A stretch of 38,382 bases of DNA, from contig CBFFRQ010000060.1 in the NCBI GenBank assembly GCA_965644315.1, forward strand, positions 1 to 38,382, written 5' to 3'. Position 1 is the stretch's first letter. The number at the start of each line of letters is the position of its first letter. A program made the position numbers and the translations under genes. Source of the stretch: Caecitellus pseudoparvulus (Eukaryota > Protista > Bigyra: Bicosoecida). The notes under the pieces were generated by a model that saw only the letters and a program-made list of their open reading frames with translations, had not been told where the DNA came from and searched no databases. This document shows, piece by piece, positions 4,467-38,382 of this stretch.

Positions 4467-7400
4467 ATGGCAAGGCCTGCACCGCTTCCTCCCTCGGTGG
4501 AGCCACCCACGTGGGCGCCGCCAGACACCCGGGCGGCTTGGAGCTGCCAGTCAGCTGCAGCCCAGCCCCGTGATGTTTCGTCCACAATCGTGTCCCCCGA
4601 GGCGTGGGGAGACACGTACATGGCACACCTGCGCCAGGCCTGCCCAGACTTTGTGAAAGCCGAGCAGGCCTTTGAAAGCGGGCACTTGCGTGGGCCGGAG
4701 GAGTGCCATTTGGATGAGGCACACTCTCCGCTGGTGCTGGCTGCCCGAAACGCCGACGGCAGCCCCAAGCCTGGCCTCGCAGCCTTTGCCCTGTGCGTGC
4801 AGGGCCGCCCGCTACACGTGGGCTGCAGTGACAAGTGCATGAACTGCGCGGTGCCCCGCCCTCTCCTTCGCAGCTCCTGCCCCTACCTCTTCACGGCACA
4901 CATTCCGCCGCATTTGTTGATCATGGCTGATGCAGCAATGCGAGGGGTTGGCAGCCCGGCACACGCAAGCCTGGGCTCTGCGCTTGGCTGTGCTGCAGAG
5001 ATGGCGGCAAGCACGCAAGAAGTCATGTCATCCACGCTCCCCTGCTCCAAGCTGTTCGTCCACCCCGTCACGGGGCGAGTGATGGCGAATGTGAGGCGAT
5101 TGGGTGTGCAAAAACGCCACACCGCCATGCTACGTCACATGCCCGCCCCTCCCTCGCCCCCCCGCCACAGCTGCACAACCCAGCAATGGAGTACACCTTC
5201 TCCAAGGCTAGCCCAGCGCTGGAGCGATTCGAGGCCCCTGGAGCGCCCCTTTCGCGCCCGTCTGCCGAAGTCCCTTCGACCAGCACTTCAGCAGCTCCGA
5301 GGCCAACCGAAGCTGACCCAGGGGGCATTGACGTGGACCAGCTGCGCCACACAAACCACGCATTCATCGTGGCACTGGGACAGCGCTGCTCCAGCATCAC
5401 CGTCGTGCAGCGCACCCGGGCGCCAGGCCTCTCTCAAGGTGTGTGAAATCGTCAGCCCACCTGGGCCCTGTCCCATTGAGTGGTTAGGAGGGGTTCGTTT
5501 TTGAGCTTGTCAGGAGGGCATGTTGGCGATAGTTGTATGTGATAATGTACTGAGTATAAAATAACGAATGCATACATTATTTTTGTCAGAGTGTGCTTGA
5601 AAGGTTGGGTCTGTGATGCAAACTGGATGCGGAATTTGCTTGCCCACGTTTGTAAAAGGAGGCTGCTGTCTTATGTTCCAGTCTACTTGCGCGTATTCGT
5701 ACACTTTCGTGATCCAATGCAAATTTTTATGAAGTGTGGGCCGAATTTCGAGGAATCGGGCCGTTTTGGTGATCACCCTCTTTCGATTCGGGTGAGTTGT
5801 CTGTCGATTACGAACAGAGGGCCTGCGTCGTCATCGAGGTGCTCACAAACCCGCATTCGACACCGGCGCAACCAGCACTCCAGCCCCCATGTGTCTTTCA
5901 CAGTGTCGAACTACCGATCAAACGATCAGCGTCCCAGGGTTGCAATTCACAATTTTCACCTCGAAGGCTTGCACTTCCCGCAAGGCGAGTTTCGCGGAAA
6001 TCGAAATGAGTCTTGGTTGAGACAGGCCGAACAAGGCACTGTGAGAAAAGACTCCCCGTATTGTCTTGCACAGATCATACAACCATGTCTGGCATGCAAT
6101 TCCTGGTTTCCTTTTTACTGTTGCGCCGGCGGCAGCATGTCCGTAGGTTGCAAGCGCTCCAAGCACTTATTGCCACAGAAGCAGCACTGTTGCTGGCAGT
6201 GGTAGCAATGGCCGATGAAGATGGACACGAGCAGGCCGTGCCACTACCGTGCTTCGATGAAGACTGTGCTCTGGAGGAGGGCGTGAGGGCCAGCGCACGT
6301 GGCCGCACCAATCCTCTTGCAGGTTTGGCATCCGGTGTGAGGACGTGGGTGGCACGGCAACATGGAGTGCCTCTCGAAGAGCACGAGGTTTGCACAACCC
6401 CACATACGGTGTTGCAGTATACTATGAAGCAGTTGTGCTCTGTTGGTGTGAACACTATTTTAGCTCTATCGGTGTGGTTCATGAAATCTTCTGCACCAAA
6501 ACTCTGGTACAGGTGGGTCATGCATTCGATCCTACCCGTGGAAGTAGAGGCCCACGCTGTGGAGCTTGCAGGTGATGAACCTGCAGAGGAACCAGACTCA
6601 CAAGAGCACAGGACCTGGCAGAGACAGCTTCGGCGCCACAGGGAAGACTGTCTGCACGAGCACTGCAGTCGCCTTGGGGCATGCGAGCGTCCCATGGTGC
6701 AGCAACAGCCATCAGTGGCAGACTGGTGGGGTGCTGTGGACTCATCATTCTGCGGCCAAGGATGCACTTTCAGTTGGCTGGAGGCTTGTTGCCTTGGAGT
6801 GCATTATATGTGCAAGGGTTTCAACATGAGAGCTGGACAAGAAGCGTTCACTGGGGCATCGAAGTCCACATGCAGTCGAATCCTAAAGGTTTTCTTGCGG
6901 TCTATCTCATCCAGCATGTTTGAACAGCAGGTGTACATGCCAGCACCAGATTCTGGGGAGTGGATGGAGAGTGTACGATTGAACTTTGCCCTGTCAGGCA
7001 TGCAGCTGCCGTGCGTAGCAGGCAGCGTGGATGATACACATGTGCGTGCTTACATCAGTGAAGATAGTGGAAAGGGCGTATACATAAACAAGGATGGCGT
7101 GGCTTCGGTTAGTGCCCAGTGCATGGTAAGTGGCCACGGACTCTTCTGGCAAGCAGACATTGGGTATGCTGGTGCCGAAAGCGATCGGGGGAAGCTCATA
7201 AGGTCTCCCATGTTTGCGGCAATGGTCGGGAACCCAAGCTTACGTCCTTGTCCACTCCCATATACATTGGCAGCAGACTCGGGATTTCGTCCGGGGTACA
7301 CATTCTTACTTCTTCCGTTCGACCAGCGGGACACTGATGTGGTGCAGCCGAATCATTTGGTGACAATTTTCCACGATGCACTTTTGCACATTCGAGTTAA

Positions 7401-10400
7401 GGTAGAATGTGCATTTGGAGAGCTCAAGAACAGGTTCCGCATCTTGAACAACACTGCGAATGGAAACCTTGGGCCAGCAGCAGTTGCACTGCGTCTACGT
7501 GTAGCTGTAGCACTGCATAACTTTGTACTGCGAGCTCTGCCATTGCGGGCATCTGTGTGGCATGCCCTTGATGTGACAGCGCCGGGGACTGTCTGGGGTG
7601 ACCTGCTGGAAGAAGCAACGGCAAAGGTGGTAGAGGACTTGCTTGAGGCGCAGCCCCCTTCATGGAGTATGCCGAGTGCCATGGGATGGAAGACGCAAGT
7701 GCTGGAGCTGGCGCTTGGCCAGCTTCCACCCACACCATCTTCAAGTATGCTGGGGTTCAGTATCGCTCCATCATGGTGGGCACTGCCCAGTGGTGCCGCG
7801 AGAGAGTTGAAGAGCTAGCCCTTCTGCACCTGCAAGCACCTGAACAGCCTGGGGCTGCCGGCGAAGGTGATGAAGGGAGTGACTGGGAAGGTGACTCTGT
7901 TGGCAGTCAATAATGCAGTGTGTTGTCTCATGTTCATGACTGCATGGGTTGCCCAGCAACACTACGCTTCTTCAGGGCTGTAACCATTTGAAGTCGGGCG
8001 CGTGCGACCTTCAGCTCCTTGTCTGCGTCTGACAGCGGGTGCGGTGGCATGCCACGCAAGGTTGGAGGCACACTTCCGCTGTGCAGCTGCTCCAAAACAG
8101 TCTGAACCTGCTCTTGCATGCTAAGGTCACCGTCAATGATGCTTAGGTCCAACCACCCCTGCACTCTTGTAATTACACCTGATATCGCTGCATCTACCGC
8201 ACGCTCACTATGTGCGGCAGCAGCACCTGGTGCAGGCACCGAAAGCGAAGGTGCGGGCTGCTGCACTTGCAAGGACTGCTGGAAAAACTGAAGAAGTGAG
8301 GCGTCCTGTTGTGCTTGTCGTTCCCGTGCTGCCTCTTCAGCAACCTGTCGTTTCTCCAGCGAATCTGCCAAACGGGCAACGATGTCACGCATGCCTGCGG
8401 CTGGTGGTGACGTGCCAGACCCCAGGCGACCTCCATCCAGGGCTCCAGTTGCTTTTGCAACAGCAGCAACACGGCTTCCCGTGCTCGTTCCACTCCCCGC
8501 ACCTGATAGGTACTCTCCGCCCTGTCGCGGACTTTCAGTGGGCAACGCAGCGGGCCTGCCACTCGCCAACAGCGAGGCTACTGTGTGTGATCCTTCAGAT
8601 CTAGCCTCTGCAAATATCCCGTTGGTGATGTTGCGAGGCACTGAAGACATCGTTGCCTTTGGCCTGGCTTTGCCTTGGCACACGCTTGCATAATTCATCA
8701 GCTCGCCCGGAAGCAGTCCACCGTTCAGGGGTGGATAGCGCAAGTCATCAGTTGGTCCCACAGGCAACCACATTTCCTTGTTCGTTACGCTACACCGCAG
8801 GCGCTGGAAGCGCAAGCGCGCAGCGGCGCTTGCGTTTCGTGCCCTGCTCCACCCCACCTTCGTGATGTCCCAACGTGTGTACTTCTTTCCATTTAAATCA
8901 AGAGAGGGAGCACCAGGGTGGCTAGGGGCTGTGGGTTCGCTTGCCCCCCCGCTTCCCGTCCTTCTGCCCTCAGACCCGTTGATGATGTCAACCTGTTTCT
9001 TCAACGTTTCGAGGCTGGCCCAAGTACCTGAAGCTGGAACCAGAGCCTCACGAAGGAGGCTTGAAACCAGGACCAAGCCTGACCACGACAGGAAGGCTTC
9101 TTGGGAATCACTACCTGGTGTTGAAACCAACACCATGTACTTTGAGTCGTCTCGCTCCGGCCATGGCCTTCCTAGCATGTTCGTGTCATGCTCCTCGAAG
9201 GCAGTGAGCAGCAACGGCAAGAATTTGTGAGCTAGGCTCTTGCCCACAATGCCACTTCGCATCTTGTTGCTCCCTTGTGTGGCAAAAGTCCGGAACAGGC
9301 TTCTGTCAGAGCCTTCCGGGCATGGCTCACCCGACGAGACAACACGACCCCCAAGAGATGAGTAGTCAATGGTACCCTCACGAACACCCAGACGAACGAT
9401 AGCTCCAGACATTCTCCATGCACTTGCTTTGTTTCCAAAGGCAGCCCAGGTCGACGACGGCATCAAGGTGGCGAACTCCTTCTTGTCAGGGTGCGTCTGC
9501 ACCCCATTCTTGGACGGTGTTTGCAACAGAGCTCGATCAGTAGAGGCCCACGGAATTGGGCTCGCTGAGTCGAGACGCATCAACGCACGGGCAGGGGAAG
9601 TGGCAGCTGGTGTCGCGCCGACGGCACCAGCAGCACTCCGTGGTGGGGAAGGGCTGCCAGCTGTCCAGGACACACCACCACTCTCCAAGTCAGGACTTGA
9701 ACTGTCACTCTTGCCCTCATCACCACTCATGTCAACGACCTCGTCTGCGGGCAGAGTCAGGAAGGCGTGTTTGCGAGAAGCGTTTCGGAGTTTCACACAG
9801 CGGAAATGAAAACGAACCGAAAGCTTCCAGTTGTTCCTTAGCGTTTGTCTTCATCCTCCTGGCAATGCTTGCTGTAAGGGCAGCAATCCGGACTGGTCTG
9901 GTAGGCGTTGCGATGGCGGGTGATTCTTGCGCAGCGAGTTCGCTTCCTGGAGGCGTTGCAGGCAGCTCAAACACCCGTCCTGCTGCCCCGAGCCTCGCGC
10001 CCGTCCGCAGTCGGGAAGTCGGTGCGTTACCTTGAAGGAACTGTCGGACCAGTGCATGTGTGTCCGCTTGCGAGCCTTCAACTGCGGTTCTTTTGCCACT
10101 CGTCGGCGCATCTGCCTGAACGCGTGCATTCCGGGGGCGCTTGCGGCCAGACATGGCAGCAAATCATTCCAAGAGTATGCTCACAACTTACTGTGAATAG
10201 TTTAAAAGTAGAGTTTGATATCCATATCTGCACTGCTCGCCATGGTACACAAACCACTGCCAGCAAGTGGCAAATTCCGCATGCTAATAGGCTCGATAAA
10301 CAACGCTCTGTTGCACACGACAGAGCGGCCGTTCAAGTCTAACATCCTCTGTTAGTGTCAAGGTGACAAAACATGCTGCCTGCAGCACTTTTCCGTGAAC

Positions 10401-11477
10401 TTCAAAAAATGCATTCTCGTTTCACAGATTTTCTCGATTCAGAGGCCTCCGCTGGCCTCAATGAGACACGGCCCTGCAGCAGAACTTCGAAGGCGCTGGC
10501 CTTGCTGCACTGCACTCGTGCCCGCCCTGCCCTGAGCACAGATGGAGGGTCAAGTGCCTGGTTCGCCTCCAAACTGCACGTGTACTTGGAGTTCACACCC
10601 AATGGCCGCCTCACCGGCCTTGTCGTGGCTCACGACATGGTGCGGAAACCCACCCGCTCCGCCGCACCTCTCACGCGCAGCACAGCCCTCCCCCTGCCCT
10701 GCACAGGATCCCCCCGTGAACATCCCCAAGCCGTTGTGGGGGCGTGCTCCGCCCTCACGAGCCCTCACAGCGCCATCCTGTGTCCCAGACTGGGCCTTTC
10801 GGCCTCCCAGCCAGCCAGGCAGCAACGCACGTGAGCGCCCTGTAACCGCCTCACCGCACGCTGGCCCCTGCCCTGCCTCTTGCGCCTGCCAGCGCGGCTT
10901 CCGAGAAGTGTCCATTGCAGCACAGGCACTGTTCGGCCAGGGGGCGCCCCCCCCTGGCGCCATGGCCGCGTCAGCGCTCCGGCCTGCCCCCATACACACC
11001 GGCCATGGCTTGCACGACAGGCCTGTGCTGCTGCTGCCCTCTGTCCAGTCGGCTTTCCCGCCGCAAGACGCCCAGCCTGTGCGCGATGCAACGCAGAGCT
11101 TCAGCCTGCCTGCTCCGCTGTGCGCCTCTGCGGACAGCGGCGGTGCGGGGCTCACGCCGGCGGCTGCGTTTGAAGGGCGCTCCGCCTCCCCCCTGCACGG
11201 CCGCGATGGCGCGACAGCTCTGCCTCGTCGCGACAGCTCAGATCCGCCCCACGCCTCGGCCACCTTCGCCCCAGCCCCGTGCTGCGTCACCCTGCGCCCG
11301 ACCTTGCTCGCGGTGCCGCCGGCGCCCTGCAGCGTCACCACGGATGACCCACGCCCCGCCTCGCCGCCTGACGTCACCCTGGAGGCCCCCAGCTGGGGCC
11401 ACCTTCGTTCTGCTGCTCGTTTGGCGCCGGGGGCACAGGCGGTGCCAGCACACCCCCTGCACTCTGTCCAATTCTGA
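4467..11477 (+). CDS. Spliced hypothetical host gene spanning the Harbinger insertion
   Basis: Frame-consistent junctions: intron 5091-5170 (GTGAGG..CACAG, MAN|LHNPAMEY), intron 5439-10541 (GTGTGT..CACAG, GLSQ-D-GGSSAWF; contains the transposon), intron 10640-10706 (GTGCGG..CACAG, AHDM|DPPVN), stop at 11477. Start and 5' exons are uncertain. Confidence 0.55.
5464..5480 (+). repeat. Left TIR of Harbinger element (preceded by CTG TSD)
   Basis: Its reverse complement matches 10457-10473 at 15/17 nt. Confidence 0.88.
6085..7818 (+). CDS. Harbinger/PIF DDE transposase (DDE_Tnp_4/HARBI1-like); true C-terminus possibly in the shifted frame ending 7913
   Basis: HTH-like GFNMRAGQEAFTGASKSTCSRIL; catalytic-region motifs GSVDDTHV, YINKDGVASVSAQCMV, GYAGAESD, LAADSGF, LLLPF, RVKVECAFGELKNRFRIL and ALHNF. 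First ATG at 6085. Confidence 0.92.
   Translation: MSGMQFLVSFLLLRRRQHVRRLQALQALIATEAALLLAVVAMADEDGHEQAVPLPCFDEDCALEEGVRASARGRTNPLAGLASGVRTWVARQHGVPLEEHEVCTTPHTVLQYTMKQLCSVGVNTILALSVWFMKSSAPKLWYRWVMHSILPVEVEAHAVELAGDEPAEEPDSQEHRTWQRQLRRHREDCLHEHCSRLGACERPMVQQQPSVADWWGAVDSSFCGQGCTFSWLEACCLGVHYMCKGFNMRAGQEAFTGASKSTCSRILKVFLRSISSSMFEQQVYMPAPDSGEWMESVRLNFALSGMQLPCVAGSVDDTHVRAYISEDSGKGVYINKDGVASVSAQCMVSGHGLFWQADIGYAGAESDRGKLIRSPMFAAMVGNPSLRPCPLPYTLAADSGFRPGYTFLLLPFDQRDTDVVQPNHLVTIFHDALLHIRVKVECAFGELKNRFRILNNTANGNLGPAAVALRLRVAVALHNFVLRALPLRASVWHALDVTAPGTVWGDLLEEATAKVVEDLLEAQPPSWSMPSAMGWKTQVLELALGQLPPTPSSSMLGFSIAPSWWALPSGAARELKS
7934..10154 (-). CDS. Harbinger second (accessory) protein, ~715 aa, 2 exons (10154-9818, 9744-7934)
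   Basis: ORFs 9732-10154 and 7934-9796 join in frame via a 73-nt intron 9817-9745 (GTTCGT...CTGAC...CCCGCAG), giving LEAF-D-EVVDM. N-terminal NLS-like MSGRKRPR. Lies inside the TIRs, convergent with the transposase. No clear Myb/SANT motif visible by eye. Confidence 0.75.
10457..10473 (-). repeat. Right TIR of Harbinger element (followed by CTG TSD)
   Basis: Its reverse complement matches 5464-5480 at 15/17 nt. Confidence 0.88.
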
Positions 11478-16838: not shown

Positions 16839-19019
16839 ATGCCGTCCGACGCCAGCGCCAAGAAGGTGAAAAAGGAGAAGAAGGAAAAGAAGGAGAAGAA
16901 GGACAAAAAGGCCAAGAAGGAGCGCGGCTCCAAGCGCTCCCGCGAGGTGGAGGTGGTCTCCGGAGATGCAGCTGAGGCTGCCGCGGCGACAACCCCTGCC
17001 GCCTCCCCTGACGCTGTTCCTGCAGCACGCAAGCGCCCCCGCACACGCTCCATGGGCAGCGTGGATGACGACCCGGCTGTGTCCAGCATGCTGGGCAGCA
17101 AGGCCGCTGCTGCCGCTGCCGGCGACGGCTCTGGCTCGGAAGACGACTCCAAGGCTGCGGAAATCGGTGGCAAGACCTCCCCGCTGTCGCGCTTCCCGCT
17201 GTCAGACGTGACGGTCAAGGCGCTGCACGCTCGCGGCATCAAGAGCCTCTTCCCCATTCAAGCAAGCACCTTCGCGCCTCTGTTTGGCGGGTCAGACCTC
17301 ATCGGCCGTGCACGCACAGGCATGGGCAAGACGCTGGCCTTCGTGCTGCCCACCATTGAACAGCTGCTGCAGGCGCCAGGCGGCCCCGTGCGCCGCGCAG
17401 GGGGCGCAGGCCCCGCCATCCTCGTCATGGCACCCACCCGTGAGCTGGCCAAGCAGGTCGCGTCTGACTTCGAGCTGACCGCCCCCACCCTGCGCACGCT
17501 GGTGGTGTACGGCGGGACGGGGTACGAGCCCCAGCGCCGGGCCATGCGCAGCGGCATTGAGATCGTCGTGGGCACGCCCGGGCGCATCAAGGACCACGCC
17601 CAGAACGGCACGTTGAACTTGGAGAACCTCACCCACGTCGTGCTGGACGAGGCCGACCAGATGCTGGACATGGGCTTCGCAGACGACATGCGGGAGATCC
17701 TGGACTTCAACCCCTACCTCAACGCCAAGGCGGCTGCTGCGTCAGGTGTCAAGGGCGGCGCAGAGGCCCTCGCAGGCATGTCGGGCTCCAAGCCCCAGGT
17801 GGTGCTGTTCTCCGCCACCCTGCCCTCCTGGTGCAAGGACGTCTCGCGCAAGTATATGACCGACCCCAAGGTCATCAACCTCGTCGTGGAGGGGTCTGGC
17901 GCAGCCAGCAAGGACGTGCAGCACCTGGTGCTGCAGGCGCCCTGGCAAGTGCGCGCCAGCACCACCAACGACCTCATCCGCATGTACTCGGGTGTGAAGG
18001 GGCGCACCATCATCTTCTGCGACACCAAGAAGGACGCCAACGAGCTGAGCGTGGACCCCGCCGTCACCGTGGACTGCGGCGTCCTGCACGGCGACATCAG
18101 CCAGTCCCAGCGTGAGACCACCCTCACCGCCTTCCGCGAAGGGCGTGTCCGGTGCCTCGTCGCCACAGACGTCGCCGCGCGTGGCCTGGACATCAAGGGC
18201 GTGGACCTGGTCGTGCAGCTACAGCCCCCCCAGCGCAACTTCAGCGGCAAGGCGGACGTGGACACGTACGTCCACCGCAGTGGCCGCACTGGGCGAGCGG
18301 GGGCCAAGGGCACCTGCATTACGCTGTACACGCACAGGGACGAACACGTCCTGCGCGAGATCGAGCGCGCCACCAAGAACACTTTCGTGCGCATCGGCGC
18401 ACCCCAGGTGTCGGACCTCGTCGGCGTCGCCGCCAAGGAGACCGTCGCCAGCGTCGTGGGCGTGGACGCCAAGGTCGCCTCTGCATTCGCTGACGCCGCA
18501 CAGGAAGCCCTGGAGGCGTGTGACGGCAATGCCCTGGACACCATCGCCCGCGCCCTCGCTGCCGCCAGCGGGTACACAGACTCCCTCCCCGTCCGGTCCC
18601 TGCTCAGCGCCGCAGACGGCATGGTGACCCTGCAGTACACAGCTGCCCCGCACATGAAGGCGGAGGGCGGCATGCGCTCAGCCAGCTACGTCTGGAACGC
18701 CCTGCGCCGCCACCTGCCCGAGCAGATCGTGGAGAGCATCAAGGGCATGCGTCTGGCCGCCGATGGAACGGCAGCAGTCTTTGACCTGCCCTCCAAGGTC
18801 ATGCCCCAAATCGAGCATGCGCTGGAAGAGCCAACCTCAGGCATCACCAAGTGCGAGACGCTGCCGGAGCTCAAGGCCAAGCCCTCCTTCCAGGGCGCGC
18901 GCGGTGGAGGCCGGGGTGGCGGCCGTGGAGGACGTGGACGTGGTGGTGGCCGAGGTGGCCGAGGCCGTGGCGGCGGCTACGGAGGCCGATCCAGCTCTCG
19001 TGGCCGATCCAGGTGGTGA
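16839..19019 (+). CDS. DDX21: Nucleolar DEAD-box RNA helicase, DDX21/DDX50 (plant RH7-like) family
   Basis: Lys-rich N-terminus, Q motif LFPIQ, ARTGMGKT, APTRELA, GTPGRI, DEAD, SAT, LHGDISQSQRE, ATDVAARGLDI, HRSGRTGR, GUCT-like region (RSLLS...AVFDLP) and RGG tail. Single ORF. Confidence 0.93.
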   Translation: MPSDASAKKVKKEKKEKKEKKDKKAKKERGSKRSREVEVVSGDAAEAAAATTPAASPDAVPAARKRPRTRSMGSVDDDPAVSSMLGSKAAAAAAGDGSGSEDDSKAAEIGGKTSPLSRFPLSDVTVKALHARGIKSLFPIQASTFAPLFGGSDLIGRARTGMGKTLAFVLPTIEQLLQAPGGPVRRAGGAGPAILVMAPTRELAKQVASDFELTAPTLRTLVVYGGTGYEPQRRAMRSGIEIVVGTPGRIKDHAQNGTLNLENLTHVVLDEADQMLDMGFADDMREILDFNPYLNAKAAAASGVKGGAEALAGMSGSKPQVVLFSATLPSWCKDVSRKYMTDPKVINLVVEGSGAASKDVQHLVLQAPWQVRASTTNDLIRMYSGVKGRTIIFCDTKKDANELSVDPAVTVDCGVLHGDISQSQRETTLTAFREGRVRCLVATDVAARGLDIKGVDLVVQLQPPQRNFSGKADVDTYVHRSGRTGRAGAKGTCITLYTHRDEHVLREIERATKNTFVRIGAPQVSDLVGVAAKETVASVVGVDAKVASAFADAAQEALEACDGNALDTIARALAAASGYTDSLPVRSLLSAADGMVTLQYTAAPHMKAEGGMRSASYVWNALRRHLPEQIVESIKGMRLAADGTAAVFDLPSKVMPQIEHALEEPTSGITKCETLPELKAKPSFQGARGGGRGGGRGGRGRGGGRGGRGRGGGYGGRSSSRGRSRW

Positions 19020-25134: not shown

Positions 25135-26341
25135 TCAGCTCAGCATGGCGTAAGATGTCACCTGCCCCACCACGCCAGCCGCGGCAGCCTGCAGAGTCGG
25201 GTACAGCGCCTGCGACCCCGACCATCCGTGTGCGACCTGCACAGTGGCACAGCCCCACGATCCAGGCGTCGAGCAGGGCTCCGTGAACCCAGACGCATTG
25301 ACGCGAATGGAGCGCTGCTCCCACACCAGCCCAGGCACAGAGCCCTGCTCTGCAGCACAGGCGCCGCCAGGGCCACGCTCTGCGCACTGCACGGCTGCCA
25401 GGGATGCTACTAGGTCGAAGAGGGCATTCGTGCCCAGCTCAGGCGAGGCTGGCCACAAGGGTGGGAATAGGCCCGGGCCCCCACCGTTGAACCAGGCCTT
25501 GAAGGCGCTGAGCAGGGTGGTGGGCAGCGGTGCACCGCGCTGGGCTGCCTGCAGGAACGTCGCGTACGCCGAGGCATTCACGGCGAACTGGCGGGAGGGC
25601 AGGATGGGCACGATGCGCAGAGGCGCTGCCCAGTTAGCAGAGGGCATGCCCCACACGATAGCCGAGGCAGTGGCGTTCAGAGCCACGTTATACTCGGGGC
25701 AAGGCGAGGAGGTATTCAGGCGGTAGCATGCCCACAAGGAGCCGCCCATGAGGATAGTGTGCATGTGGTGAGACAGGGGCGGCCACTGCGCCAGCAGCTG
25801 TGCCTGAGCTAGAGGCGGGGACAGCTGCAAGAACAGCACTGGAGCAGTGGGTGACGCGGCCTGCACCACACCCCGCATGGCAAGCAGAGTCTCGTTGGGC
25901 TGTAGGATCCCACCAGGGTACGATGCCAAGGGCATGCTGCTGCCCCACGTAGCCAGTGGCATGTCTGCGTTGCTCTGGTCTCCCGTCGGCGTGTGCAGCG
26001 CAATGGGGATGCCGCTGGCCCCAGCCTCGACCAACATGCGTGCCGCAACGCCAGCCCTGGCGGTGGTGTTCCGGGTGCTGACCACGACCAGTGCGATGGA
26101 AAATAGTTCCGGGTGGGCCAGCATCTGCGCAATGGCCCATGAATCGTCCATGTCTGCGCAAGCGGCGAGCACGAGCTGCTATGTGGCGCCAGGCTGCGCC
26201 TCATCTGCATCTGCCCTCACAGGTGCCAATGTCCGTTTCAATGATGACTGTCTGTGGGATCCTTCCTCCGAGACAAGCACAAGGCACCACGCCAAGGGCC
26301 AGAGCAAAGACCAGGCATCGCCACGCCCATCTGCAGATCAT
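25135..26341 (-). CDS. Secreted inosine/uridine-preferring nucleoside hydrolase-like protein, 2 exons (26341-26221, 26153-25135)
   Basis: Exon 1 MICRWAWRCLVFALALGVVPCACLGGRIPQTVIIETDIGT, 67-nt intron (GTGAGG..CGCAG), then YMDDSWAIAQ. Further NH motifs LMGGS, EYNV and LFDLVA. Multiple N-x-S/T sequons. Confidence 0.8.
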
Positions 26342-27192: not shown

Positions 27193-30100
27193 GTGCAGAG
27201 CGCTCCCTTGAACCTCCGAGACTTCGACATTGACGGTGTGCTCTCCCGAGCCAAGCGAGTGATTGCCTGCACGCGCTCGAGTGCTGCCCAGAGCTCAACG
27301 CCACAGCGGCCCGCGGCGTCGGGAGGGGAGCTGTCGAGCTCGCTGCATGCAGACCACACATCTCCTTCGCGTCTCCCGGCCCTGCGAAGCCGCATCGCGA
27401 GCCTGCGGCACACTGCTGCTGAGCGTCAACAGAGCAAGCCAACGCCGACCGCGAGACCCGTGTCGCCGCCTGCGGGTGACGAAGGGGCAGGGCGTGCAGC
27501 TGGGACAAGCCAGTCGGGTGAAGACAGTGATGGTGACGTGTTTTCGCAGCCAGGGTCTGGAAGTTTGGGTGGGAAAGCCAGCACCAGGGCTGGGCCATTG
27601 CCCACTCGCCCGCCCCCTTCCGGCTCAGAAGTCATCGATGCCTTGCGGAGACTAACTGGGCGTTGGGCCCAGGACAAAGCCACAGCATCAGAGCAGGGCC
27701 TGGCAGCTGTCGAGCGCCCTGCCTCTCCCGCCCTGTCTGCCACAACACCAGCTCACGAAGGAGCCGCTGTGCTCAGCGGCTCAGAGTCACCTGGGGAGTC
27801 CGCGGCTGACACCCCTGCCCGCACACCTGCAATGCCAGAGCGTGAAAGCGAGGGTGAGGCAAGCATGCACACGGCGGAGCAGGGCTCGGCGTCGAGCCGG
27901 GAGGGCGAGGGTGATGCAGATGATGAGGCGCTGCACGATCTCGTATCGCTGGCGCTGGGCGATGGCTCACCCAGGAGCCAGCAGCCAGTGCACGACCAAC
28001 AGGGCACCGAGGCCAGGGTACCCAGCCCTCCTGCTGCATCGGACTCCCCCCCCGCTCCAGCGCAGCCTGATGTTGGCGCCCGGCATACTGCCTCCACTGC
28101 TGGCGCCACCACAGCGCCCCCGGGCCCCAGCACGCCAGAAGCAGACGAGTTCTCGTACATGCACGCACTGCACTCAACGTCTCTCGGGTCCACGGGTTCC
28201 AAGAGCAGCACATCTGAATCCGCAGCCTCCATAGGCGCCTCCCCTCCGCGCGATACCAGCCCCAGCCTTACCGCAGCTGAACTTCAGCACCTGCCTGACT
28301 GGGCGGCAGGTGTGCTTCCAACACTGCCCCTCGCCACCCAGCGCTACCTGGCCACTGCATGGGTGCCCAGTGGTGCCTCGCCAGCGGAATCCTCCAAGCC
28401 CTCCAAGGTGTCTGGCCTTAAGGCGACGGCGCAGGTCTCGAAGCCAGGCCCGCGCCGAGACGCGACGGCAGAAACGATTGCACTGGAGCCTGCCGAGGTG
28501 ACGGTGACTCGTCTGCGTGCCCGGCTGGCGCGTCTGGACGATGAGTACGAACGAGCATACTCGGCCAGGCTGCGTGAGCTCGTGTCACAGGCCAACGCCA
28601 CGCCCAGCGGCAAGGCCAGGCGGCACTCAGTCAGCTCTGCGTCTTCTGCAAGCTCATGGGGCGACGAGGCCCAAGGTGCGCTGCTGCGTCAGGTCGGCAG
28701 GTACTTGCCCTCCTTCGGGGCAGCCGATGCCGCGTCTGCCTTGGCCTCCCCAGCCTCGCATGCGCCTGCGGAAACAGCTTTGCCCACAACCACATCCACT
28801 GGATCTGCAGGGCTTGCCTCGGTGTCACCCTCACCTGCCGCGTCACAGGGCACTGACTGTCTCCGTGCTCCTGCCTCCACCGCCCCCCAAGCTCTGAGCA
28901 CATCCCTCCAACGGCCACAAAGTGCGAGTCCAACCTCAGCAGGGGACGGGTCACCGTGCCTGGAGCAGCTCACGGCCAGCCTGCAAAGTGCGACACAGCG
29001 CTTCTTGGCTGGTCTGGCGAGTAGCGCGGTTTCGCCCGAGGCATCAGACGAGGAGTCAGCCACTGTAGACACGCTTTCGCCCCAGCCCGTGCAGAAAGCC
29101 TCCGGCACAGTGTCGCCACCACAGCCGCCTTCGAGTCCGCAACAGCTGAACAGCACTTCACAGGCTGATTCGGTTGCTGCTTCTGCTGACAGAGAATCAC
29201 CCCCGCCTGGCCTCGATGCCACACCGCCACCTGAGCCCTCACGTGTCTCTGCAGCCACGTCTGGCAGCAGTGCAAGCAGCCATCGAAGCACGCCTGCCCC
29301 GCCCGAGGCAGAAGACGTCTCACCCCCCTCACCTACTGGCAGCCGCGCCTCGAGGCAGTTGGGTAGGGAGGCGTCCAGCGGGTCGCTGAGCGGCCCTGCC
29401 ACCTCGGCGAACGTCTCCTCCGATACCAGTCTGGACCTGAGCTTGGCGCTGTCAGATGTGTCAGGCCAAGACCTCGTACCAGACTCGCCCCCCTCTCTGT
29501 CTCAGCACGAAGAGGCGCTGTCACTGGTCAGCGACAGCGACGCTCAGCCACAAGCCGCAGCACCGGTGTCTGCTGTTGGTCAGGCTCCCCAACCACACTC
29601 ACAGCCTGACCAGAACGAAAAGACAGGTGAACCTCCCTCGTCGCAGCGGTGCACACCACCATCACCACCCCCACCAGGACCGAGCCCGGGCCTGGGCGCG
29701 GGCAGCGTTTCATCGCCAGACACACCTTCCAAGCCAAGCACCACTCCACCTCCGCCACCTGTGCCAGTGCCAGTGTACTCACGGCACCGCCACTCCCCTG
29801 CAGGCTCCGTCACCGGGACACCACAAGCACAGGAGAGTCTTCTTGACTCTCCAGCGACCTCGCGTGATGGCAGCTGCTCCGCGGACAGCGGCCACGAGGC
29901 TGCACCAAGTGATGGGGATTCCTCTGAAACGGAGAAAGCACCCTCCTCTTCCGATGTCTCAGCAGGCGGCGTGGCGCAAGCCCCTGCCGAGGAAGGAGCA
30001 GCACTCAGCCGTGACGAATTGCAGCTTGGCGTGGCGATGGGCGCCGCGAGTCACTCCCAGGAACGCACCGCTACCTCTGGGCATACTGATCCTGAGGCAG

Positions 30101-31041: not shown

Positions 31042-31571
31042 ATTAGGGGGCCCCGTGACACATGTGCATGGGGTACAGTTCAGGGGTTGTCAGGGTGTCC
31101 GGGAAGCTATTTCCGCACCTTTTTTGCTAAGATGCCGGACACCCCAACCTTGGGGGGGGGTGCCCCCCTTGTGGACCCCCCCCCTTCGCCGCCCGTGTGC
31201 AAGGCGCTGGGAGACGCTCATCCTCCTCCGCCTGCTTGCCAGCCCTGGTTCCCAAGCAGGTTCAAGTGCCACTTTGCCATCAATGCACCGAATCACATCA
31301 ATGATTTAGTTTTAGGGGCTTGATATATACGCCTCTAGGTTCCTGAGCAAGACCAGATTCGTGTGCAACGGAGGTGCAGTGATTGGGAGTTTCGGTCACG
31401 TTTCACTGCTGTCCCTGCATCATCATGGCAGAGGGCGTGCAGCAGAGCAGTGCGCCTCACTGACATTGGTGAGAGACTTCAGTGTGCCCCGGATCCTGGG
31501 AGAGGGGACATGCCTTCTCTACAGCGCGCTCAAGCCACCGTCGCTGCGCTGTCCGTCACTGGAGGATGGCC

Positions 31572-31910
31572 CACTAGTAATTTGCAAGTTCAAAGTGTTT
31601 TTTACTAAGTGAGAATCTTGTACTAGTGCGAAGACAATGGAAAAATATCGTGCTAGTGTGAGCATGAGGGTCAGTGTGCACGCAGTCAGCTGTGCTAGTG
31701 TCAAGTCCGTGCTAGTGAAGTGCTTGAAAGCCGCAGAGGCGATGTGAAATACTAGTGTGCTTGGGGTTTGCCAAAACTGCACATCACCCTGTTCACTAGG
31801 GGTGGGTTGTGCGCTAGTGCGTCAGACCTGTCCAAAGCGTCGCTAGTGTGAGCGCGGTAGGCAGGATTCACGAGGGCCAGCTGTACTAGTGAGGTGAGCT
31901 GTACTAGTGC
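31572..31910 (+). repeat. Left terminus and subterminal YRCTAGTG array
   Basis: CTAG cores at 31574, 31623, 31653, 31695, 31712, 31752, 31796, 31814, 31843, 31886 and 31904, with a degenerate CTAAG at 31605. Confidence 0.88.
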
Positions 31911-32430
31911 AGCAGCAAGCTCGAGCTGACGTTGTGGGTGGAGCAGACCTCTCTCGTACACACACCAATAAACACAATGTTGGTGCAGTCTTCGACTCTG
32001 TGTGCCATCTTCATCGTTGTCTCACAACTACCACGGCTTTTGTTTGGACCATGATCATGCTATCGGGCTAGGAAGAGCCCTGCGTCGACTGGTGTGGCGT
32101 TTCGCTTCTAACGGGTTCTCCGCGCCTCTCCCATGCGGAACCGGGTAGGACTCCCACCAGGTCCCCGGCCCCTGGAAAACCTACCATGACTTATGCTTAG
32201 GTTTGGCCGGCCCTGGCGCCTTGTGGTGGGCTTGTGCTAGCGGTGTTGGACGGCTTCGCCGTGATGCAAGTGCCTGGCGCACGCAGCTTCGCAACGTTCG
32301 CTGCCACAAGACAGGCTCGGTGCATTGGCATGGATGAAATGTGAGGGAGGCCTGATGAAAGGTGGTCCATCCGTGCTGCAGCATGGAACTTCTCTTGTCA
32401 GCCAGCGTGTGGCGCAAAGCTCTCACAAGC

Positions 32431-35400
32431 TCAGTGCTGCCGCGCTGTGATGGTCGGCAGCCAGAAGAGAACCGGGTCACCATCCGGCTCCTCTGTGTAA
32501 GTGTGCCCCTCCACTACTGTGGGGTGAACCACCGCTGGAGCGATGAGAACACTGCCACCCACTGCGTTGGCTGGGGGGGCGACATCCAGCGGGTTCACGT
32601 ACTTCCATCCAGCTATACATGCGTGGGCCTCGTCTGGGTGCAAGAATGTCCCCAACAACACCACCTCCTCAATCGAGGCATCTTTCTCATGGTCCTGGGG
32701 TGCATCACCAACAAGAGCAGCGACAGCACGGAACAACCCACTCCCAATGGCTGGCGCGGCTGCCCCTTGTTGCTGCTCCTCACGCACAACCACGAAAGCG
32801 GGGAAGCACAGCGTCGACGTGTTCCCGCCTGGGAAGCACATCAAGACGGTGCTGCACAGCCGTACTTGTCCCACCATCCTATCTCCAGTACCAACTGTGC
32901 TGGAGACGCTCTGCAGCATGGTATTCACGTCCCCTAGAGGTAAGACCCCATCCAGAGACATTCCGGCCACGCAGGGCTCCAAGGCTGCGCGGATTGTGCG
33001 GGCCAGCCCACTGTCTTCCCTGTCGAGCAGTTGCCAGACAGTGATTGGTGATCGGAGGACCTCGCGAGCCTTTGTTACAGGGGACAGGTACGGCATCTCT
33101 GGCAGCGGGCTGCCTTGCAGCAGGCAAGCAAGCTCTTCCCCAGCCACCTGTGATGAGGCGCTCGTCACCCATGCCTCGCTTACCAGCATGTCTCGGCGGA
33201 TGGATGCGTACGTCAACAACTTTGGCATATTGGCTGCCCCAAACGCAGAGTTGCACAGCTTCCACAGGCGGATGAGAGCGGGGTGCCGGCCCTCCCCGTT
33301 GTCAGTGTCCAGCGCTGCAACTACCCCAAAGCCTGCCACAGCTGCAGGAAGGTGCTGTATCTCGTGGGCCTTGGGATAGTGTGTGCTGGTGTCGCATGAA
33401 AAACTACTCCCTCCGGACTTGGAGGCTGCCTCTTGCACAAGCTCAGCGATCAGCTCCTGCGTGCCAACCATCCGAGCTAGCCAAACCTGCATGCCAAGCA
33501 GGGCCGCTTCGTCCAGTGTGTCTCGCACATACATGTATGCCTGTACTACCAGTGTACAGTGACACAGCACTTGCACCATGGTGTGCAGCTGGGGATCAGC
33601 AATAATGTCTTGGTTGTGTCCGACGATGAGTGGCAACCACTGCGCCCTGCTAACGCGCTCGGCCGACCGCATCATACCCCCAGCATTCTGCCGCCATGGC
33701 AGTGCTCTTCCTCCATCAAGCCGAGTTCCGTTTATGGTCACACCCTTGACGGCCTCCCATCGGCTTTTAAGGAGTGCTTCCCTCGCAGCAAGTCCTGGAC
33801 CGACAGTCATCGCAGCTAGGACAAACCTTTCGCAGCGGGCCGCTACAGCCCCCGTGTCGGCCGCGTGGATGGGATCTGGAGGCCTCAGGAAGCACAGCCG
33901 GGTTCCTAGTACCTTCTCAGCCGCTTCCCACGCGCTGAGTGCCCCTCTGCGATGTCCAGTGGCCGCGGCTGCCTCATCGCTGCCGGCTCCCTCTCCCCCT
34001 ACCCTGAGCTGACAGTGTTTCAGCGATGCCAGCGAGGACAGCTGTGGACCGGGGACACAGCGACACTGCACGCACCGCCGATGGAGCAAGTCAAACTGAT
34101 CCCACGCTTCCACCATGTCCGCCGACAGCTGGATAATGCAAGGCATCATCTGCACATACTCCACCAGCTGCCTCGGGCGACTGTGTGCGGTCACCTGTGA
34201 CACCCTGTACCCAGCAGACTTCAGTGCAAGGGACTGCTCTGGAGTCACCTCCTTGGGAATGCCGCCCATCTTCTGGATCGCGAGCAAGGGTTGGAGGACA
34301 AGGCTCAAAACCATGGACTGTGCTGCTTGTGCTGTGGCCGCAGCCGAAGTCAGGCCCGCCTCTCGCAGCACGTTGTCATCCTTGGGAAGTCTCTTTGGGC
34401 TCGGGGGCATGGCGAGCAATGTTGCCCTGTGCGCCTTGCGCATGGAGGCAGCATCCCCCGCAAGCGGCCAGAGCATCATGGGATACAATGCATGCTTCCC
34501 AGCCCCATCAGGGTGCACTTCGTCCATGAAAATGACCAGCGGCATGGATAGCGCCCCGCGCGCCTTGGCGCGTTCAGCCGCATTGCGCAGGAAGACGCCA
34601 TTGGATGGATGGCTCCATGTCTGTCCTGCCGCCCCAGCTTCGGATGGACGGAACTGTTTTTCAACGCTGACCGGATCTCTGAGGCTACAATGGCCAACCT
34701 CGAGGGGGGCAGGGAGCGAGATCTCCCCACCGCCCGGTAGCTGCAAGGCGTCCTTCATGCGTCTCCAATGCGCTGTCGCCAGCCCGTCTGCAAAGTGGAA
34801 CTTTTCTTTCACCTTCATGGCAGCGCTATTGTGTGCTGGCAGCTTAAGTGTTGATGGGAACCACTCTGGACTGGCGACGCCACCTCCTCGGTGAGGGGCG
34901 AAGTCCTCCAGTGGTACTTCGGCAGCCGTGCGTATAAGCACGTCCCACAGTGGCATGGAAGGCACTTCGCACTGTCCACCTGCCAGTCCCTTGGGTAAAG
35001 GTACAGTGATGGAGATCGGGGAGGGGGTTCCTTCCGCGGCGATCTCCAGCAGCTTGTCGATGCTTGGCACCATGGGACACTGTGGAGCTGTGCGATGCTC
35101 CTGACGAAGAAGCACCTCAGAAGTCTTGATCGTCTTGTTGTGCTCCTTGATGATCTCCGTCAGCACACTCTTGCTGGCGTTGAAGCGCAGCAGACACTTG
35201 AGTATGGTCCGGCCCATGCCCCCTCCAATGCCTCCACCACTACCCGCACTCTGTGCTGACAGCCGATCAGCGTGCGCTATGGCTCTGGCGACCAGCTCGG
35301 TGTGGCGTGGAGGGATGTGCTTTGCTGCTCCGGGTTGCTTTCGTGGTCCCCCGGTTGGCTGGGGAAGAGCTGGCTGTGCCATCTGGGCTTGGACGGTGGC

Positions 35401-35694
35401 GGCGACAGGCTCAACAACCAAAGCAAAGGGTGACCCCCCCCCTTGTGAGTGCCCGGCTGCCATGCGCTTGGCACCCACATCATGTTGAGGCCGCGCCGCG
35501 GCTTGCTGGTGGCGCTTGCGTTCAAGGCGAGTAGTTCGAGCTTCTGAAGCCAGCCGCTCCTGAACCTCACGAAGCCGTTGGACTTGTGCTTCTTTGTACG
35601 CCTTCATCCGCCTGCGACGACAATGGACCATATGGCCGCCAAGAGCTCGTTCGTCGTCGAACTCCTTGTTGCAGAGCTTGCAGCGGGCGCTCAT
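32431..35694 (-). CDS. Plavaka-family transposase with N-terminal C2H2 zinc finger (~1087 aa)
   Basis: C2H2 finger CKLCNKEFDDERALGGHMVHC. Plavaka-like motifs PLVIFMDEVHPDGAGKHALYPMML, QLSADMVE...CVQC, PDPIHAADTG and PKAHEIQHLPAAVAGFG...DTDNGEGRH. First ATG at 35694; uninterrupted ORF. Confidence 0.85.
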   Translation of the reverse strand: MSARCKLCNKEFDDERALGGHMVHCRRRRMKAYKEAQVQRLREVQERLASEARTTRLERKRHQQAAARPQHDVGAKRMAAGHSQGGGSPFALVVEPVAATVQAQMAQPALPQPTGGPRKQPGAAKHIPPRHTELVARAIAHADRLSAQSAGSGGGIGGGMGRTILKCLLRFNASKSVLTEIIKEHNKTIKTSEVLLRQEHRTAPQCPMVPSIDKLLEIAAEGTPSPISITVPLPKGLAGGQCEVPSMPLWDVLIRTAAEVPLEDFAPHRGGGVASPEWFPSTLKLPAHNSAAMKVKEKFHFADGLATAHWRRMKDALQLPGGGEISLPAPLEVGHCSLRDPVSVEKQFRPSEAGAAGQTWSHPSNGVFLRNAAERAKARGALSMPLVIFMDEVHPDGAGKHALYPMMLWPLAGDAASMRKAHRATLLAMPPSPKRLPKDDNVLREAGLTSAAATAQAAQSMVLSLVLQPLLAIQKMGGIPKEVTPEQSLALKSAGYRVSQVTAHSRPRQLVEYVQMMPCIIQLSADMVEAWDQFDLLHRRCVQCRCVPGPQLSSLASLKHCQLRVGGEGAGSDEAAAATGHRRGALSAWEAAEKVLGTRLCFLRPPDPIHAADTGAVAARCERFVLAAMTVGPGLAAREALLKSRWEAVKGVTINGTRLDGGRALPWRQNAGGMMRSAERVSRAQWLPLIVGHNQDIIADPQLHTMVQVLCHCTLVVQAYMYVRDTLDEAALLGMQVWLARMVGTQELIAELVQEAASKSGGSSFSCDTSTHYPKAHEIQHLPAAVAGFGVVAALDTDNGEGRHPALIRLWKLCNSAFGAANMPKLLTYASIRRDMLVSEAWVTSASSQVAGEELACLLQGSPLPEMPYLSPVTKAREVLRSPITVWQLLDREDSGLARTIRAALEPCVAGMSLDGVLPLGDVNTMLQSVSSTVGTGDRMVGQVRLCSTVLMCFPGGNTSTLCFPAFVVVREEQQQGAAAPAIGSGLFRAVAALVGDAPQDHEKDASIEEVVLLGTFLHPDEAHACIAGWKYVNPLDVAPPANAVGGSVLIAPAVVHPTVVEGHTYTEEPDGDPVLFWLPTITARQH

Positions 35695-35985
35695 TCTGAG
35701 TCTTCTGTAGCGTGAGGGCACCGGCGGAGTTCCGTTGCTTGCGTTGGCGCCCCTACCGTACGTACGCAACGCGCACAGCGAGGCGAGAACGCAACACAAT
35801 GCCAGGCAGCCGTAGCATCTTCATGTTGGTCGTTGGTGTGTGTTGGGCTGTGGGCATTGAAGGCGCCTTGCAACCTCGTCCAGTGCATTTCCAGTCTGTC
35901 TCGACATTCCACCGTTGCATGTACTTTCAGACCCACCAAGTCCTCAGATACGCTTTTTGTTGCACACCCACCCCAACCATTCACC
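35695..35985. promoter_or_regulatory. Putative bidirectional promoter between the transposase and the accessory gene
   Basis: ~290-bp gap between head-to-head start codons; positional inference only. Confidence 0.35.
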
Positions 35986-38028
35986 ATGTCACTTCACTTT
36001 GATGAAATGGGCTCTGACAGCGAGGATGCAGGGGACACAACGGCAAGTGTCGTGGCTTCGTTAAGTATCGCCACACCCCTCGAGGCTGCACACCTCTTCA
36101 ACCGCAGCACGGCTGCCAAAGCTGTGATGGCCGGGAAACGTCGACGGGATGTTGTGCTTTGGGCATCTCACCCTGGCAACTGCACTGGGTCCGTCGTTGG
36201 GGTGCCTGACGTTCTGGAGGGTAATGGTACGTACTGGTTCGCGCCACAGGATCGACGCCCGTGCAGCGCCTCCCCACCCCACCCTAGCATCATGTGCAGG
36301 TGATGCCAACGCACTCACATGCCTTGATGACAGGGAGCTATTCGGCACAGCTAGGGGCGGTTCTAGTGCTGCCATTGCGGCTCGTACGTACCTGCTCTGC
36401 AGTCACGGTAGCCACAGCGTTCTAACGGCCACTGCTAAGCTTCGTTGGACCGGACCAATCCCGCTCCCCTTCCCCAGAAGCCTTCGCCGCAAATACAATG
36501 GCGAGCTGCAGACCGATCAAGGCACCAAGGCCGCTTGACCTTGCTGAGAAGCTTGAATCGGCGAAGGAGCTGCTTGAGTCTATTGGCACGCCCAGCGAGA
36601 AACGTCTCATCGAGTTGTTGAACGAGGTTTTCGTTTGGAGCGCAAACACCATGTCCCTTGTCCAACTCTCACTTGGCCTGGGGCAATTCAGAACTTCACA
36701 GGTAGTGGGTATGGTTGGTCCACTAACGCAGAAGCAGGAAGCAAAGAACTCCAAGAAACGTGGAGCTCGTGGGGGAGACCAGCTGGGTGAACTCTTAGAG
36801 CCCGTGGGGGGCGCAGACTCAATCCCATGGCCCCGAAAGTTCAGGGCAGAAGCCCGCCGCATCGTGGTCGACCTCATCCTCGAGAACCCTTCGTTCATCT
36901 TGGCAGACCCCGAGAACCTGGTAGACACACTACGAGCAGCCATCGAGGCAGTTGAGGCCGAGCAGAACGTTGCCCGAGAGGTGGCTGGAGCCACAGAGGA
37001 AGGGGGAGATGGGGTGCCGGTTGGAGCACAAGCCACGAGCCGGGCTCTAGACGACCCTAGGTTCTCAGCACCGTGGAAGTTCAAATGCCTCGAAAACGTG
37101 ATAGCAGCAGCGAGGAAGGTTTCGATACAGAAGGAGCTTACCGAGCGGGGTGGCGTGCTTTGCGCGCTGAAGGACATGGCGAAGAGCAGCAAGAGTGCGA
37201 GTTACGCCGGGCTGAAGGCCGCCATGAGCAATGTCAGGAGCAAGTGCCGCGCCAAAATCACGAGGTGAGTGCCCAGAGGACTCCTTCCGAGTCCGTGGAG
37301 CGCAGCATAGCAGACTTCTGAGCATTGCGCAGTTCGGAATGCCTAGGAAAGTTCGAACCGTGGCACGAGATGCAGAGGAAGTACGAGCCAGTCCATGAGA
37401 AGTGCACCGGAGGTGCAAGCATTCAGCTTGACCACGACCCAGCCTTCTTCGAGGTGTCTTCCGAGGACCCTGAGTACCGCCACAGTTGGGTGCCCAAGGT
37501 AAGTATGTGTGTGAGTCTAGACCCGCACAGGTGATGCTGGGCCCGAATGCTCCTTTCTCATGCATTCTCTTTGTGCCACAGGCTGAGAGGGGCAAAAAAA
37601 GGGCTGATCGATCAAGGCACCGCCTGTGCTTGCAGGAAGTCAACGTTGCCCGTGAGGCCATCGTCAATCATACCACCATCAAGGCTGTTTTCAAACGCCG
37701 GGGATCCGAGGACTCCAGTAGCGGCCCCCGTTTCGACCCCAGCTTCAGGCGTTTGGAAGCGGCGCTCAGTGGCCCAGAAGATGTGGCAAAAGGGGCCAGG
37801 ATTGTCTTACGATGGATGGAGGCTGCGTACAACGTTGCTGTCGACTGCTTGAACGTGAAGAACAAGCAGTGGGTGACTGATTGTGGGGACCTGAGCAGCC
37901 TGACCGTTGACGACAAGGTGCGTGCGTGCTGTATGTTGGCCATGCTGTGGACGTCGTTACGCATGAAGCACCACGTACAGACGGAGATGGCCGTGCTTAC
38001 GCACAAAATTGTGTCCAGGATAACCTGA
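35986..38028 (+). CDS. Spliced accessory gene of the Plavaka element, unknown function (~574 aa)
   Basis: Exons 35986-36226, 36300-36383, 36478-37264, 37333-37498 and 37582-38028 total 1725 nt and splice in frame. Donors GTACGT, GTACGT, GTGAGT and GTAAGT; all acceptors end CAG. Possible extra in-frame intron 37918-37980. Confidence 0.75.
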
Positions 38029-38139
38029 CATGCCCTCCCTCGACCTGGCGCCGAGCCATCCGTGCTGAAGCTACTTCATTGTTCTTCAGGTTGTCAAGGT
38101 GTGTTTCAATGCAATCGATTCACGGCAGACCGAACTTGT

Positions 38140-38382
38140 TGCGCTAGCGAAGAATGTACTACTAGGAAAAATGTCCAGCTGGGCGGTGCGCTAGTAGTGC
38201 GCTGGGCGGCCCTCCGTACTAGTAGCGCCTCGCCCAGCGAAATTTACTAGTACCGAGCACAACCACCCCCGCTCACTAGTGTGCCTCTGGGCATGCATTC
38301 TCACTAGCATTGCAGTCGCCCCACTCACTTCACTAGCGCAAAATTGAGCTCTAGAAAAAAAACACTCTTCAAACTCTCCTTA
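38140..38382 (-). repeat. Right subterminal array (CACTAG/TACTAG, inverted relative to the left array)
   Basis: CTAG cores at 38144, 38162, 38191, 38219, 38247, 38276, 38304, 38333 and 38351. Confidence 0.88.

Follow-up and report, generated by a model that had tools for sequence, protein, structure and literature searches.

The window analysed here, 38,382 nucleotides (nt) of DNA from the protist Caecitellus pseudoparvulus, is an entire contig (C60) of a 30.6-Mb assembly in 215 contigs, from a GC-rich eukaryotic host with short GT-AG introns, matching DNA of which is seen in marine metagenomes. Its right-hand end holds a two-gene mobile element that begins at position 31553, inside an older host repeat, and runs off the contig. 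We have good confidence that this is a cut-and-paste transposon belonging to the CMCT clade, recently active and probably autonomous, on a highly divergent branch related to Plavaka; its probable autonomy is read from intact frames and young copies.

The element and its features

The element comprises an intronless transposase gene and a spliced second gene (gene 2), arranged head-to-head between two subterminal motif arrays. The features are listed by window position; dN/dS is the ratio of non-synonymous to synonymous substitution rates, and C44 is a diverged copy in the same genome.

31081–31552, forward strand: left part of an older, multi-copy host repeat (about 1.04 kb, ends CAGGGGTTG, hAT-like) that received the element insertion.
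31551–31552, no strand: expected left copy (GT) of a 2-bp target site duplication; the empty site in another host-repeat copy runs on after 31552, and the 2-bp rule comes from other copies of the element.
31553–31559, forward strand: left end, the 7-bp terminal inverted repeat CCGTCAC (partner GTGACGG), where seven near-identical and two diverged copies start, with unrelated flanks.
31572–31910, forward strand: left subterminal array of 11 CTAG-core motifs, mostly CTAGTG, the first being CACTAGTAA.
32321–32326, reverse strand: AATGCA hexamer about 105 nt past the transposase stop, a candidate polyadenylation signal.
32431–35694, reverse strand: transposase gene, 1,087 amino acids, an open frame without introns or stops (dN/dS 0.18–0.41 against C44).
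33292–33294, reverse strand: E801, assigned third catalytic residue (D798-x-G-E801), invariant in six sequences at 24–83% identity.
33352–33366, reverse strand: H777-x3-H781, ahead of E801, both histidines invariant in the six sequences.
34063–34119, reverse strand: D526, assigned second catalytic aspartate (S-A-D-M-V-E), with C541-x2-C544; the aspartate is present in five of six sequences and C544 is invariant.
34522–34524, reverse strand: D391, assigned first catalytic residue, invariant, ending a predicted β-strand (153–161 of the model).
35620–35682, reverse strand: N-terminal zinc finger of C2H2 fold, residues 5–25, ligands C-C-H-C.
35695–36006, no strand: 312-bp spacer that separates the start codons of the two genes, probably a shared two-way promoter.
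36007–38028, forward strand: gene 2, about 567 amino acids in five exons (36007–36226, 36300–36383, 36478–37264, 37333–37498 and 37582–38028).
38108–38113, forward strand: AATGCA hexamer 80 nt past the gene 2 stop, kept in C44.
38144–38354, forward strand: right subterminal array of nine CTAG-core motifs, with an orientation bias opposite to that of the left array.
38355–38382, forward strand: final on-contig bases of the element; complete copies continue for 21 nt to GTGACGG.

Ends, target duplication and copies

In complete copies the element is 6,851 bp long, starting with CCGTCAC and ending with GTGACGG. Genome matches to positions 31400–32400 start at query base 153–154, that is, at 31552–31553, and the part of the element in the window is identical to the complete copy C102, the final 21 nt lying beyond the contig end. 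The perfect terminal inverted repeat extends over 7 bp only; a repeat finder picked up only short paired arms between the arrays, without any long inverted repeat at the termini.

A preliminary description, made from the sequence letters, had given the element a CACTA terminus at 31570–31572. That assignment was wrong because the copy boundaries lie at 31553: all copies start at the equivalent of this position with CCGTCAC, and the CACTAGTAA at 31572 lies 19 nt inside, as the first subterminal CTAG motif. Both outcomes that the description itself had set as refuting were observed, the shifted boundaries and the lack of any Pfam Plavaka/CMC match to the protein. Its broader picture, a two-gene transposon with ends and second gene open to definition, holds on other evidence for a multi-copy, very young element with ends that are not CACTA. 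A canonical CACTA/EnSpm element beginning at 31572 could call on the CACTAG found there, on the CACTA-like arrays and second gene, and on one copy (C49) that starts two bases ahead of the motif, yet we give it next to no chance. It is refuted by the copy alignment, in which seven near-identical and two diverged copies extend outward by another 19 nt and start with CCGTCAC; GTGACGG rather than TAGTG forms the right end, the duplications are of 2 bp, and Pfam returned no EnSpm transposase match. The C49 copy itself (L027:960–995, 7790–7830) has lost its first 16–17 nt and shows a flank duplication of 16–18 bp and CC microhomology; it is an aberrant insertion, resembling a one-ended insertion completed by repair.

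The four copies with both ends assembled are flanked by 2-bp duplications without a fixed target sequence: CG (C102), AT (C69), CA (the diverged C44) and AT (a deleted copy, C18, whose right tip is slightly mutated). Five further contigs carry only a left junction (GT in the window, then TT, AT, CA and GC), and another four have the right junction alone (TT, AT, CA and GC), the latter matching the left-junction dinucleotides one-to-one; the chance of such pairing is about 0.2% if dinucleotide frequencies are assumed equal. Because left-only and right-only junctions pair in this way, we infer about eight loci in the genome, several of them broken up by the assembler. The right junction of the window copy, with its second GT, was not found anywhere in the assembly. 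A 3-bp duplication with CGTCA ends was rejected, as the outer C and G are present in every copy and missing from the empty site, with only 2 bp matching outside. The clustering of copies at contig ends was set aside as a telomere signal, the split copies pairing by their duplications, which points to assembly breaks.

The copies are at least 99.9% identical, with at most five differences over 6.8 kb, nearly all of them homopolymer indels, and the insertion position is unoccupied in other host-repeat copies; the element is therefore young and has recently spread. In a related strain, 95–97% identical here, the whole insertion, host repeat included, is missing at the same site. An 8-bp duplication around the CAGGGGTTG-ended host repeat was not confirmed in the single complete copy examined.

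Transposase and second gene

The transposase frame is open throughout 32431–35694 on the reverse strand, in agreement with the preliminary description, which had reported an uninterrupted protein of about 1,087 residues with an N-terminal zinc finger. That finger is weak, reaching Pfam zf-C2H2_6 at E 2.3e-5 when 25 residues are searched in isolation, and the final C of its C-C-H-C ligands is the one retained in relatives. We assigned the catalytic triad from conservation and predicted strand topology: D391, C544, H777, H781, D798 and E801 are invariant across the six aligned sequences, D526 is kept in five, and C541 is lost in three relatives.

A run of nine cytosines (C9) lies at 35434–35442, near codon 84. 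Because the frame across it is in register with the C44 copy, the open form is, judged by its reading frame, the intact one. The run is C7 in four assembled copies and C10 in one independent sample, variation that may reflect error or real slippage. In a further copy (C19; L028:4900–9312), a 4,413-bp element with two open reading frames, DDE_Tnp_4 and SAP domains and TAGGTCTC ends is inserted beside this run; its apparent 5-bp CTTGT duplication is unusual among Harbinger-type elements.

As modelled, gene 2 runs from an ATG at 36007 to a stop at 38028, and its four GT-AG introns, of 68–94 nt, recur in C44 at identical positions and in identical phase; an alternative acceptor for intron 1 at 36333 breaks the frame. 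Its exons are 44–73% identical to those of C44, with dN/dS of 0.18–0.55 per exon where computable, and it evolves faster than the transposase core; the substitution ratios indicate that both genes are under purifying selection. Searched exon by exon, gene 2 matched no Pfam family, dioxygenase, SET and methylase domains included, and in the Atlas only weak helical look-alikes, with no known homolog. No TET/JBP gene is present in the element; an accessory gene of this or the PAG type is frequent in Plavaka but not obligatory. The exons likewise gave no Pfam or Atlas match to a PAG-type accessory gene, a comparison from which PAG1 and PAG4, having no model, were absent. The head-to-head spliced partner gene and mirrored end arrays of the preliminary description are thus borne out, the latter by an enrichment of CTAG to 11 occurrences in the first 400 nt (p<5e-5) and nine in the last 300 nt (p 2e-4), against about two expected in each.

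Sister families and deletion derivatives

The same genome holds at least four further families with long open frames at 24–29% identity, two of them represented by metagenome contigs (L043 and L046) of the same or a very close species. The CCGTCA end and head-to-head layout are common to families just 24–25% identical in protein. L043 ends with CATGACGG, and its boundary is proved by an empty site in this genome, to which the flank aligns starting with the base directly after the element; in L046 the sequence breaks off at GTGACGG, where the contig also ends. Each has a head-to-head partner gene, and the two partners are homologous (E 2e-12); homology of either to gene 2 is not demonstrable, a by-eye match in exon 5 being no better than shuffles. 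The L043 array is built on a TCATGA-based motif, as opposed to CTAG in the window element.

The C44 copy (L035/L036) is a mosaic, 80–97% identical across the transposase core and 55–73% elsewhere, a sister family having supplied the ends, the N-terminus and gene 2, which suggests recombination between families. Seven non-autonomous elements of 3.3 kb (C13, C17, C18, C24, C65, C69 and C94), 91–92% like C44, retain gene 2 and the two ends but have lost the transposase; a single stop in the exon 3 region is seen in most of them. Further deletion derivatives occur in this genome and in other samples, non-autonomous forms with both ends among them, and gene 2 is missing from a 2-kb derivative family and from others.

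Among more distant sequences, contig L042 (56–420) has CCGTCAC and, after it, a tandem array of 29-bp units upstream of transposase P0001 (see below), in a different gene layout; this is possibly the end of the P0001 element. Another relative, P0005, on a 5.6-kb contig (L047) of GCA_024449685.1, looks decayed and lacks the second D; that assembly has more than 1 million contigs, and contamination is possible.

Proposed mechanism and the role of gene 2

We propose that both genes would be transcribed from the 312-bp spacer. The DDE transposase, with an RNase H core and a zinc-bound helical insertion as in EnSpm, Transib and RAG1, would pair the two CCGTCAC ends, excise the element and insert it elsewhere by joining across a 2-nt stagger, repair of which would leave the 2-bp duplication; this cut-and-paste mode with a 2-nt stagger is carried over from the CMCT clade. 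Because the inverted repeats are too short for specificity, the CTAG arrays may serve as protein-binding sites. By our analysis it is an even bet that they are bound by gene 2, acting as a helper or regulator of TnpA type; the zinc finger of the transposase itself would be the other candidate binder. Deleted copies retaining both ends would be moved in trans. There is precedent in En/Spm, in which TnpA binds subterminal repeats and in which helpers of different families have no shared sequence (PMC2613891).

Gene 2 might instead be a captured passenger or anti-silencing gene, dispensable for cut-and-paste, like TET/JBP or the accessory genes of red-algal elements. We regard this as a serious though somewhat less probable option. 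Plavaka elements do carry varied accessory genes (PMC12730594; 10.1101/2025.02.11.637652), and a passenger would fit the faster evolution of gene 2, its retention in the seven 3.3-kb derivatives without transposase and the lack of provable homology to the partner genes of distant families. Yet those distant families keep mutually homologous head-to-head partners, the array motif varies by family (CTAG against TCATGA-type) as expected of a fast-changing binder that tracks its sites, and no dioxygenase, SET or methylase domain was found.

Relationship to Plavaka

CMCT transposases are defined by a DDE triad that has motifs C(2)C and H(3-4)H in the stretch from the second D to the E, by duplications of 2–5 bp and, mostly, by CA..TG ends (PMC12730594). 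The window element shows the D/D/E triad, C541-x2-C544 with H777-x3-H781, and a 2-bp duplication, but its ends are CC..GG. The CA..TG rule is also broken by PlavakaA (PMC12730594) and by several red-algal Plavaka elements (10.1101/2025.02.11.637652). As for canonical CACTA/EnSpm, subterminal repeat arrays are present and a CACTA or CACTG terminus is not; the element would work like Plavaka and CACTA elements and is not a canonical CACTA element.

Word-index protein searches with the transposase gave nothing new, and an exhaustive search was therefore used, which found five relatives among 1.84 billion representative proteins, the best being P0001 (E 4.6e-31). P0001 in turn matches the Plavaka family PF18759 over model positions 80–317 (E 6.7e-5). 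A language-model feature search of the Atlas ranked a Plavaka cluster first (0.95, 178 shared features), as did an Atlas shape search with the first structure model (template-modelling score 0.39 by target), in which the commonest taxon of the matched cluster is diatoms, based on six records. Against solved chains the same model placed RAG1 first, weakly (Z 7.9, 263 aligned, root mean squared deviation 6.3). No other CMCT family appears in the match lists from profile hidden Markov models (HMMs), features or shape, so that the remote similarity is nearer to Plavaka than to other CMCT groups. The transposase gave no match in a Protein Data Bank (PDB) sequence search or in Foldseek comparisons with PDB and viral models, and no relative of it was found in the viral contigs searched. 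Through transitive homology, language-model features, shape and motifs, formal membership of Plavaka is likely. Known Plavaka end motifs (TGT, CATCA, CGTCT/CGTCA, CGACG and CACTG/CACAG) do not include CCGTCA, which equals CGTCA plus one C; the most likely placement is on a divergent branch of Plavaka whose ends carry one terminal C more, because red-algal Plavaka elements have CGTCT/CGTCA ends with 2-bp duplications. The Plavaka motifs named in the preliminary description are thus present as DDE and CMCT motifs but without a direct profile match, and, as regards its possibly undescribed lineage, the end signature is unlisted for known Plavaka families, in an element nonetheless related to Plavaka. 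The literature searched contained no report of a CCGTCA-ended family or of a transposition test of Plavaka elements.

The element could also represent a separate, unnamed CMCT lineage that is restricted to this group of hosts, sister or equal in rank to Plavaka as ESTA and Lanisha are, with CCGTCA ends and a head-to-head accessory gene as its defining marks. The case for it is that just five relatives exist among the 1.84 billion representatives, none of them a named Plavaka, that at least five families at 24–29% identity occur in this genome, that families with only 24–25% protein identity have the CCGTCA end in common, and that CMCT ends are mostly CA..TG (PMC12730594). We nevertheless consider it unlikely, as all named matches are Plavaka and red-algal Plavaka ends (CGTCT/CGTCA, with 2-bp duplications) are one base short of this one (10.1101/2025.02.11.637652). 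A bolder version, to which we would give a slimmer chance still, is a new CMCT lineage outside Plavaka, of which at least five families have radiated in one marine protist group, and in which gene 2 is a new type of helper that recognizes the subterminal motifs particular to each family and is exchangeable among families through recombination.

Several points weigh against placing the element as a young, autonomous Plavaka relative. Pfam scans of the 1,087-residue protein, whole and in parts, returned only the weak N-terminal finger, with no Plavaka or EnSpm transposase match, and the PF18759 score of P0001, at 22.7 bits, falls below the cut-off of 26.3; a PF18759 profile scan of the genome also gave no match, and carries little weight, as the scan control found nothing either. 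The structure models are poor (predicted local distance difference test 41 and 50), and since the second one did not repeat the RAG1 ranking, the evidence from fold is weak. Consensus polishing of repeats may have exaggerated how nearly identical the copies are, and in the independent sample the C9 run is longer by one C, which would break the frame there after codon 84. RNA support for either gene or its splicing is nil, the single RNA run having held only relatives, as contigs. Derivatives without gene 2 (the 2-kb family and others) are compatible with action in trans and do not discriminate for a helper role.

Surrounding sequence

Elsewhere in the window, positions 5464–10473 hold a two-gene Harbinger-type element (DDE_Tnp_4, E 8e-13) that is missing from this site in the related strain and is 100% identical to a 5-kb insert within the C44 Plavaka-like copy, where it is flanked by a CTG duplication. 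Two segments of about 350–400 bp each (29232–29578 and 4079–4487) are unaligned in the related strain and are possible small insertions. Ordinary host genes encode a DDX21/50-type DEAD-box helicase with a GUCT domain (16839–19019) and a divergent nucleoside hydrolase (25135–26172).

Comparison with known systems

The Plavaka elements described to date come from fungi and red algae and are mostly large or decayed copies. As a compact 6.9-kb unit that has exact ends, a 2-bp duplication, copies of young age, naturally deleted derivatives and a single accessory gene, the window element offers a ready test system, in which one could ask how a Plavaka-like transposase cuts, whether it needs a helper and how its ends departed from the CAC type that is shared with RAG1; the element adds to transposon diversity rather than providing a new mechanism.

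Transib and RAG1, also of the CMCT clade, make 5-bp duplications and have CAC ends. They have the same zinc motifs, and the first structure model weakly matches RAG1 and an amphioxus RAG1-like protein over the whole core, but no sequence match was found. Plant CACTA elements make target duplications of 3 bp. The element described here differs from them in its 2-bp duplication, in having no CACTA end and in giving no Pfam match to plant CACTA domains. It resembles En-Spm, with its TnpD and TnpA, in short inverted repeats, subterminal arrays, a second protein and deletion derivatives, whereas its two genes lie head-to-head and those of En-Spm come from one alternatively spliced transcript (PMC2613891).

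Fungal PlavakaA and PlavakaB have in common with it a DDE transposase bearing C(2)C and H(3-4)H, a 2-bp duplication and a size of 6–9 kb (PMC12730594; PF18759), and the CATCA of PlavakaB resembles its inner CGTCA. Their ends are TGT..ACA or CATCA..TGATG (PMC12730594), and the window element has neither TET/JBP nor a direct PF18759 match. Red-algal elements have ends of CGTCT, CGTCA, CGACG or CACTG/CACAG and 2-bp duplications (10.1101/2025.02.11.637652). In contrast to these, the window element has an extra C (CCGTCA), an inverted repeat of 7 bp rather than 13–35, a length of 6.9 kb rather than 10–22 kb, and a single accessory gene in which no methylase, SET or oxygenase domain was detected. 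The red-algal EnSpm-Plavaka families of Bostrychia, Gracilaria, Kappaphycus and Chondrus are like it in their 2-bp duplication and CGTCT/CGTCA/CGACG end motif, and in carrying accessory genes that in some families lie on the strand opposite to the transposase (10.1101/2025.02.11.637652).

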